Source: Blastocladiella emersonii ATCC 22665 | Taxonomy: Eukaryota; Fungi; Blastocladiomycota | DNA length: 64,000 bases | Direction of reading: 5' to 3' | Assembly: GCA_025594325.1 (NCBI GenBank) | Contig: JANHCV010000002.1 | Span: forward strand, 1,922,001-1,986,000 | Part shown: positions 4,444 through 6,103 of the stretch, piece by piece | Numbering within the stretch: position 1 is the first letter of the stretch | Layout: every line of letters begins with the position of its first letter | Translations under genes and position numbers: made by a program | Notes under the pieces: model-generated | The model's input: the letters and a program-made list of their open reading frames with translations, nothing else | Databases searched by the model: none | What the model was told of the DNA's origin: nothing

Positions 4444-6103
4444 ATGGCCACTGAGCGTCTCGTCCACCGTCACACCCTCGAGGGTATGCCGTCCGCCTTC
4501 ACCGCGGCGTCCGCGATGCATGCGGGGCTGGGATCACGGCGGCGGCGGCGGTGGTGGTGAGCGTGCGAGCGGATGGCTGGACGTGGCAACTCAAATCCGT
4601 CCGACCAGCCGCCGGCGACTCTCACTCCCTCACCACCACCCGCCGACCGACCGCCCGAAAAACCACCCCCCCCCCCCCCGCCATGCATCGCGACGACGCA
4701 CACGAAAAACCCATGCAATCGACCACTCGACGCTGACGCCGCCACCACGCACCTCTGCGCCGTCGTTTTCTCGCAGGCCACCGCGGCTGGGTCACCGCCG
4801 TCGCCACCTCCCAGGAGGCGCCCGACCTTCTGCTGTCGGCGTCGCGCGACAAGACGCTGCTCATCTGGCAGCTGACCCGCGACTCGCAGCAGTACGCGAT
4901 CGCGCGCCGCGCCCTGACCGGCCACAACCACTTCGTGCAGGAGATCGCCCTGTCGTCGGACGGCCAGTTCGCCCTGTCGGCCTCGTGGGACAAGACCCTG
5001 CGCCTGTGGGACCTCAACACCGGCAAGGCCACGCGCCGTTTCATCGGCCACACCAACGACGTCCTCTCGGTCTCGTTCTCGGCCGACAACCGCCAGATCG
5101 TGTCGGGCTCGCGCGACAAGTCGATCAAGCTCTGGAACACGCTCGGCGAGTGCAAGTACAACATCGAGTCGGCTCACACCGAGTGGGTCTCGGCCGTCCG
5201 CTTCTCGCCCAACCACCAGACCCCGATCATCGTCTCGGCCGGCTGGGACAAGCTCGTCAAGGTACGTTTGCTCTTTGCTCTCGCGTCGAGGAGGAGGACC
5301 GCGTGCGCGAGCCGTGGTAGCAGTAGCAGCAGGAGAGCAGGTAGCAGAAGAGCTCGCCGTCGTCCTCGTTGCGCGTCCCGATGACCGTGTACGCCTCGCG
5401 CGTATGCGGGACCCGGGGCGCGAGCCTGGAAATGATGGTTCTTTGAATATTTGCTACTTCAGATGGAGCAAGAGGCTCTAATGAGACTTGAAAAATCCAC
5501 ATTGCGTCTGATCCAGCCCGATGACCGACCGAACTCGACCTGCTACTTGATCTGCCTGCTGCCGCTGCCGCCTCGCCGTGCCGCGCGTCTACTTCCTCCC
5601 CGTCGACTCGCACTGACTCAAACTCGATCACTCACCCGCCCTCCCCCTCGCCCCCGCCATAGGTTTGGGACCTGACCAAGTTCAAGCTCCGCACCAACCA
5701 CATTGGCCACAAGGGCTACATCAACTCGATCACCATCTCCCCCGATGGCTCGCTCTGCGCCTCGGGCGGCAAGGACGGCATCCCCATGCTCTGGGACCTC
5801 AACGACGGCAAGCACCTGTACTCGCTCGACGCCGGAGAGGAGATCCACGCCCTGACCTTCTCGCCCAACCGCTACTGGCTGTGCGCTGCCACCACCACCG
5901 GCATCCGCATCTGGGACCTCCAGACCAAGACCCTGGTCACCGAGGCCATCGTTGGCGAGGACGACCTCCTCGAGGAGGGCGAGACCAAGAAGGTTGCCCC
6001 CACCCCCCTGTCGCTCACCTGGTCGCCCGATGGCACCACCCTTTTCGCCGGCTACACCGACAACACCATCCGCGTCTGGGAGCTCATCTCCTCGTCGCAG
6101 TAA
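4444..6103 (+). CDS. RACK1: RACK1/Asc1/Cpc2 G-beta-like WD40 ribosomal protein; join(4444..4483,4777..5261,5663..6103)
   Basis: Spliced translation [12 protein letters not shown]...SASRDKTL...[21 protein letters not shown]...[14 protein letters not shown]...[13 protein letters not shown]...[20 protein letters not shown]; splice phases are consistent. Confidence 0.97.
5426..5516 (+). ncRNA. U24: Box C/D snoRNA U24/snR24 in RACK1 intron 2
   Basis: Terminal stem CTGGA(5426-5430)/TCCAG(5512-5516); C box ATGATGG 5432-5438; D' CAGA 5460-5463; C' ATGAGA 5481-5486; D CTGA 5508-5511. D' guide TTTGAATATTTGCTACT is complementary to LSU rRNA AGUAGCAAAUAUUCAAA. U24 is known to be hosted in fungal ASC1/cpcB introns. 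Confidence 0.9.

Follow-up and report, generated by a model that had tools for sequence, protein, structure and literature searches.

Non-canonical D guide of the U24 snoRNA in a RACK1 intron of Blastocladiella emersonii, and a U33-like snoRNA matching the ancestral LSU site

The RACK1/cpc2 gene of Blastocladiella emersonii hosts a box C/D snoRNA that is clearly the orthologue of U24/snR24. Its D' arm is the canonical U24 guide, while its D arm does not pair as a guide with the LSU site that the canonical D guide recognizes, and this site is matched in the same genome by the D' guide of a second, U33/snR55-like snoRNA. Because of this second match, our best reading, which we hold to be probable, is that another snoRNA came to cover LSU C1600, which made the U24 D guide dispensable, and that this guide then drifted, its present complementarity to 5.8S rRNA being fortuitous. 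The initial annotation had proposed that the D arm was retargeted from LSU to 5.8S, a claim that fares poorly for reasons developed below: the match is not clearly beyond chance, the duplex is weak and the guide is not conserved in relatives.

The host gene, the parts of the snoRNA and the D guides compared are listed in Table 1, with coordinates given for the window (the whole stretch of 64,000 nucleotides that was analysed). The WD40 gene was identified through its exon 2 only, used as query over 4779-5381 with open read-through into the intron; over the scored residues 1-161 this exon is 100% identical to the cpc2/RACK1 protein of B. emersonii ATCC 22665 (P0001). Synteny of the RACK1 neighbourhood is not conserved in the relatives.

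Table 1. Host gene, snoRNA elements and D guides. D guides are given with the D box that follows them.
Feature	Coordinates	Strand	Sequence	Basis
RACK1/cpc2 host gene	4444..6103	+		GT..AG boundaries, reading frames
RACK1/cpc2 exons 1-3	4444-4483, 4777-5261, 5663-6103	+
RACK1/cpc2 intron 1	4484-4776	+
RACK1 intron 2, hosts snoRNA	5262..5662	+	GTACGT...CCATAG
U24/snR24-orthologous box C/D snoRNA, ~91 nt	5426..5516	+		alignment, boxes, stem covariation
Terminal stem, 5' half	5426..5430	+	CTGGA	complementary to TCCAG 5512-5516
C box	5432..5438	+	ATGATGG	GAT core invariant in alignment A1
D' guide, canonical U24 guide to LSU 1609-1625	5442..5458	+	TTTGAATATTTGCTACT	17 Watson-Crick pairs
D' box, non-consensus, fungal U24 type	5460..5463	+	CAGA	invariant in A1
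C' box	5481..5487	+	ATGAGAC	ATGAGA invariant in A1
D guide, non-canonical	5488..5507	+	TTGAAAAATCCACATTGCGT	5494-5507 imperfectly paired with 5.8S 60-73
D box	5508..5511	+	CTGA	TGA invariant in A1
Terminal stem, 3' half	5512..5516	+	TCCAG	5-bp stem, covariation
U33/snR55-like box C/D snoRNA	L009(-)1537-1459 (G000:C16:455469-458483, contig 16)	-		Rfam, boxes, terminal stem
Blastocladiella D guide			ATCCACATTGCGT-CTGA
Allomyces D guide			ATCCACAATTATTTG-CTGA
Catenaria D guide			ATCCCACCGTGGTATGA-CTGA
Sorochytrium D guide			TTCCACCATTGAGGGTGA-CTGA
Paraphysoderma D guide			AACCACCTTTTTGAC-CTGA
Polychytrium D guide			ATCACCAAACCA-CTGA
Umbelopsis D guides, two copies			ACACCACT-CTGA and ACACCATTT-CTGA
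Basidiobolus D guide			TTCACCATATTT-CTGA
Fimicolochytrium D guide			TTTCCACCCATAGAAA-ATGA
Cladochytrium D guide, canonical			ACCACCAAGATCT-CTGA
Trametes D guide, canonical			ATCACCAAGATCT-CTGA

Orthology rests on the host gene, on alignment and on covariation of the terminal stem. At the gathering threshold Rfam gives no match in the window; a permissive search of the intron (431 nt) returns SNORD24 (RF00069) as the best family with 23 bits (E = 0.18), below the SNORD24 gathering score of 41, and the alignment to this family is good except at the D guide. RACK1 genes from ten other fungi each contain a homologous intronic snoRNA: the Blastocladiomycota Catenaria, Allomyces, Sorochytrium and Paraphysoderma, the Chytridiomycota Fimicolochytrium, Polychytrium and Cladochytrium, and in addition Umbelopsis, Basidiobolus and Trametes. 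Together with B. emersonii these form alignment A1 (12 RACK1-intron U24 copies from 11 species, Umbelopsis contributing two), in which the C-box core, ATATTTGCTACTTC of the D' guide, the D' box, ATGAGA and the TGA of the D box are invariant in all 12 copies. The terminal stem shows compensatory changes at 6/6 pairs, with 74.6% of its cells paired compared with 49% in shuffles, and its covariation score is reached by 0/500 shuffles. The B. emersonii snoRNA thus shares with U24/SNORD24/snR24 of the ASC1/RACK1 intron the host gene and intronic position, the C, D', C' and D boxes, the covarying terminal stem and the very same D' guide against the LSU GUAGCAAAUAUUC region. It differs from the family in its sub-threshold Rfam score (23 versus 41 bits) and in a D guide that lacks the canonical U24 CACCAAGAUCU complementarity to LSU AGAUCUUGGUG. 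A check of the genome for further U24 loci found a single copy only, and the snoRNA would be processed from RACK1 intron 2.

The two guide arms behave very differently against the rRNA of B. emersonii itself, for which the rDNA unit on contig 17 was used with LSU, 5.8S and SSU delimited by Rfam. Along its full length the D' guide matches LSU 1609-1625 by 17 contiguous Watson-Crick bp (-22.8 kcal/mol), bearing out the initial description of this arm as the canonical U24 guide; the arm is conserved and predicted to function at the LSU GUAGC site (A1612/G1613). Yeast U24 has an unusual C'/D' motif with two-site methylation (PMC5389607). At positions 5495-5511 the sequence is ATCCACATTGCGTCTGA, that is the D guide ATCCACATTGCGT followed by CTGA, which differs from the canonical CACCAAGATCT-CTGA. 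The B. emersonii LSU retains the canonical sequence AGATCTTGGTGGTAGTAGCAAATATTC, which contains the D-guide site AGATCTTGGTGG, so that the ancestral target is intact; the D guide is indeed non-canonical, as was proposed from the window alone, although the canonical target is still present. Complementarity to LSU AGAUCUUGGUGG with the C of AGAUC at position 5 is not found, and at the canonical site the D guide pairs through CCAC:GUGG only (-6.0 kcal/mol). On the B. emersonii LSU the D guides of Trametes and Cladochytrium, which are canonical, form 13 bp with position 5 on C1600. Two causes of the D-guide loss are ruled out, a changed LSU target because the LSU is canonical and a second U24 paralogue with a canonical guide because U24 is single-copy in the genome.

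Comparison of the D arms across fungi places the B. emersonii guide within a wider pattern. A canonical-type guide (CACCAAGATC-CTGA) is kept by U24 in Cladochytrium and Trametes, and the canonical guide is taken to be ancestral since it is found in a chytrid, a basidiomycete and the Rfam consensus. It is missing in 9/12 of the RACK1-intron copies (8/11 species), and on the sequences in Table 1 it has been lost or rewritten several times in fungi. Of the proposal of guide replacement in a deeply conserved host-gene/snoRNA pair, the U24 orthologue, its RACK1 intron, the canonical D' guide and the non-canonical D guide are supported, but the change is not singular to B. emersonii. The five Blastocladiomycota have five different sequences in the box-proximal bases of the D guide, and the B. 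emersonii guide differs even from that of its closest sampled relative, Catenaria. In Polychytrium, Basidiobolus and both copies of Umbelopsis the D guides are decayed. What persists is a CCAC or CACC core, found in each of the nine non-canonical copies (at least five independent lineages), while all nine have another sequence in place of the neighbouring AAGATCT, suggesting that the D arm's 5' half is under constraint. The two Umbelopsis ramanniana copies lie in one RACK1 gene (L021:1840-1929 and L021:2044-2128) and both have a truncated D arm with a C'-to-D distance of 13-14 nt; copy 1 resembles the canonical guide minus 4 nt (an AGAT deletion).

The D arm of Fimicolochytrium jonesii (U24 at L019:2081-2172) stands apart. 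Its guide matches SSU TTCTATGGGTGG (near position 1315 when numbered as in B. emersonii) by 12 contiguous Watson-Crick bp, which 1/3000 shuffles equal, and a lineage-specific retargeting of this arm to SSU is credible. Since this guide looks truly retargeted, the U24 D arm can apparently gain new targets. The terminal boxes of the same snoRNA are degenerate (C = GGATTA, D = ATGA).

The 5.8S complementarity that gave rise to the retargeting proposal is present in the species' own 5.8S, which contains ACGTAATGTGAAT in the context GATACGTAATGTGAATTGCAG. Positions 1-10 of the D guide are paired (9 Watson-Crick pairs plus one G-U, at position 4), position 11 is an A/C mismatch and pairing resumes at positions 12-14, exactly as had been described, and A64, the leading A of AAUGUG, lies opposite position 5, as had been forecast from the D+5 rule (predicted Am64). 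The antisense element is thus at least 10 bp long, lies next to the D box and has its target at position 5. The compensatory C and G that the initial annotation had hoped to find in this 5.8S are absent, since it reads GATACGTAATGTGAATTGCAG. Among LSU, SSU, 5.8S and the fetched spacers the 5.8S site is the top match of the D guide, and other candidate targets are no better, copy 1 of U2 snRNA offering 9 bp and U6, U5 and 5S nothing.

Nevertheless the match, while real, is not clearly beyond chance, as ~6-8% of shuffled guides or random intron 15-mers do equally well. An equal score on mature rRNA was obtained by 85/1000 shuffled guides (p ~0.085). Scoring instead for runs of 10 or more contiguous bp that include no more than one G-U and start at positions 1-3, 352/5000 (~0.070) and 197/3000 (~0.066) shuffled guides gave a match, as did 18/286 of the 15-mers of the host intron on mature rRNA (p ~0.063). 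The duplex reaches -13.6 kcal/mol compared with -18.5 to -22.8 kcal/mol for bona fide guides of the same genome. When the relatives' D guides were scanned against B. emersonii rRNA, those of Catenaria, Allomyces, Sorochytrium and Paraphysoderma showed no match to 5.8S, nor did any other among the ten fungi. A metagenome scan for ATCCACATTGCGTCTGA returned 24 contigs, which are regarded as chance 17-mers because none has U24 context, and a literature search on B. emersonii and snoRNA returned nothing relevant and no RiboMeth-seq data for the species.

A snoRNA that could have taken over the ancestral LSU site lies on contig 16. The 32.6 Mb genome holds the pattern CACCAAGATCNCTGA in exactly two places. 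At one of them it forms part of a U33/snR55-like box C/D snoRNA, recognized by Rfam as SNORD33 (RF00133; 32.5 bits, E 0.003) and sn1502 (RF01189; 29.6 bits) and located directly 3' of a giant U14 whose 3' end (...ccttccttggatgtCTGAgcga) lies near L009(-)1588. The other exact CACCAAGATCACTGA site (L008) was rejected, being just after an ATG and reading as the start of a coding sequence. The D' guide of the U33-like snoRNA (TTTCACCAAGATCA-CTGA) forms 11 bp on LSU (-18.5 kcal/mol) and places C1600, the very nucleotide addressed by the canonical U24 D guide, at its position 5; because this site was specified beforehand, the match is far more significant than one from a best-of-rRNA search. Its D guide forms 12 bp on the SSU GGUGGUGCAUGG region with position 5 on U1324, which we take to be the U33/snR55 site. 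The snoRNA thus has the SSU-directed D guide, C/D architecture and terminal stem of the U33/snR55 type (SNORD33, sn1502), and differs from this type in bearing on its D' arm the guide that canonical U24 bears on its D arm.

A similar exchange is on record for another fungal snoRNA family, in which an ancestral guide was lost once a redundant guide had been invented (Canzler, Stadler and Schor 2018, PMC5824354). In the CD_5/CD_26 case described there the ancestral function has gone from one family and the site is matched by the antisense element of another, with the switch leading, as in the U24/U33-like pair, from a D to a D' position (PMC5824354). As far as its main text goes, that survey of fungal target switches names neither snR24 nor snR55 (PMC5824354); the B. 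emersonii case concerns the D target of U24 and a snoRNA of U33/snR55-like type.

Coverage of C1600 by the D' guide of the U33-like snoRNA would have made the U24 D guide dispensable, and the U24 D arm no longer pairs with its ancestral AGAUC target. The guide has probably drifted through substitutions and small indels, beginning before the sampled Blastocladiomycota diverged and retaining only the CCAC(C) core, and its present 5.8S complementarity would most likely be a chance product of this drift. Redundancy is the presumed cause of the relaxation, and methylation of the predicted sites by either snoRNA is likewise a prediction from guide pairing. Counted against drift are the facts that the 5.8S site is the single best rRNA complement and adjoins the D box in correct register, that the pairing lies within common minimal guide criteria, and that the Fimicolochytrium D arm is apparently retargeted.

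The first rival reading is a true retargeting, in which the D guide would steer fibrillarin/Nop1 to 2'-O-methylate 5.8S A64. The run of 10 contiguous pairs from position 1, the 3 further pairs beyond the mismatch and the best rank among all rRNA and spacers speak for this reading, the D box and terminal stem of the B. emersonii U24 are perfect, Fimicolochytrium offers a credible precedent, and the 5.8S of human, Arabidopsis and zebrafish is known to bear 2'-O-methyl groups (PMC8393311). We nonetheless consider it unlikely: shuffling gives p ~0.06-0.085, the G-U pair adjoins the target nucleotide and the A/C mismatch follows at position 11, 5.8S holds no compensatory change, no sampled relative conserves the guide, the duplex is much weaker than those of the genome's bona fide guides, and the 5.8S of yeast is without ribose methylation (PMC8393311, PMC6171561). 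The gain of an A64 site after the Blastocladiella and Catenaria lineages split, which retargeting would entail, is correspondingly doubtful. The persistence of the core could instead point to accessory or "extra" base-pairing, the retained CCAC(C) binding LSU GGUGG just 5' of the D' target and aiding docking of the D' arm; the core would then direct no methylation, and variation would be tolerated in the box-proximal bases. Over half of yeast C/D snoRNAs benefit from such pairing near the target, which stimulates methylation (PMC3116282, PMC5389607), the LSU GGTGG adjoins the D' target, and CCAC/CACC is kept in the nine non-canonical copies with AAGATCT replaced in all. In B. emersonii, however, 4 bp (CCAC:GUGG) are left with mismatches on both flanks, and retention of the core could equally reflect snoRNP spacing or slow decay, which makes this explanation improbable, more so than retargeting.

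A non-rRNA target for the D guide, for example A130 of U2 snRNA or an mRNA, is the least plausible reading and would be very surprising. Starting at position 1, the guide pairs with copy 1 of U2 over 9 contiguous Watson-Crick bp (ACGCAATGT, -12.3 kcal/mol), but the second U2 gene (GGCGCAATGCC) has no complement and the site belongs to the 3' half of U2, which is variable. U6, U5 and 5S were tried as targets and yielded nothing. The genome has no further perfect 13-mer complement to the D guide; of 25 one-mismatch 13-mer sites none is in a tRNA, and an Rfam scan covering 20 of these 25 loci (L054-L073 of L054-L078) found no known family. The two U2 copies (L023:1501-1689 and L079) differ in their 3' variable region: copy 1 has TGATGACGCAATGTCTGA, which itself resembles C and D box motifs and within which 9 nt are perfectly complementary to the U24 D guide, and copy 2 has GACGGCGCAATGCCTGA at the corresponding region. 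Relaxation and drift of a guide presumably made redundant by the U33-like snoRNA remains the explanation that we favor.

The finding is modest, as fungal snoRNA guides are already known to be gained, lost and transferred; its added value is that of a clean, datable example in a highly conserved host-gene/snoRNA pair. A more ambitious interpretation, to which we give little credence, is that in early-diverging fungi the U24 D arm turns over its guide unusually often, with the B. emersonii arm recruited to 5.8S A64 in parallel with the independent recruitment of the Fimicolochytrium arm to SSU, both enabled by the takeover of the ancestral LSU site by another snoRNA. Were it true, this would be the first proposed snoRNA-guided ribose methylation of 5.8S in a fungus, and it would be notable because the yeast 5.8S is without ribose methylation (PMC8393311, PMC6171561). 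Three cheaply testable methylation predictions follow: LSU C1600 as methylated via the U33-like snoRNA, 5.8S A64 as probably unmodified, and the SSU site of Fimicolochytrium. With one arm invariant from Basidiomycota to Blastocladiomycota and the other repeatedly lost or rewritten, U24 offers a convenient system for studying the release of guides by redundancy and the origin of new targets.
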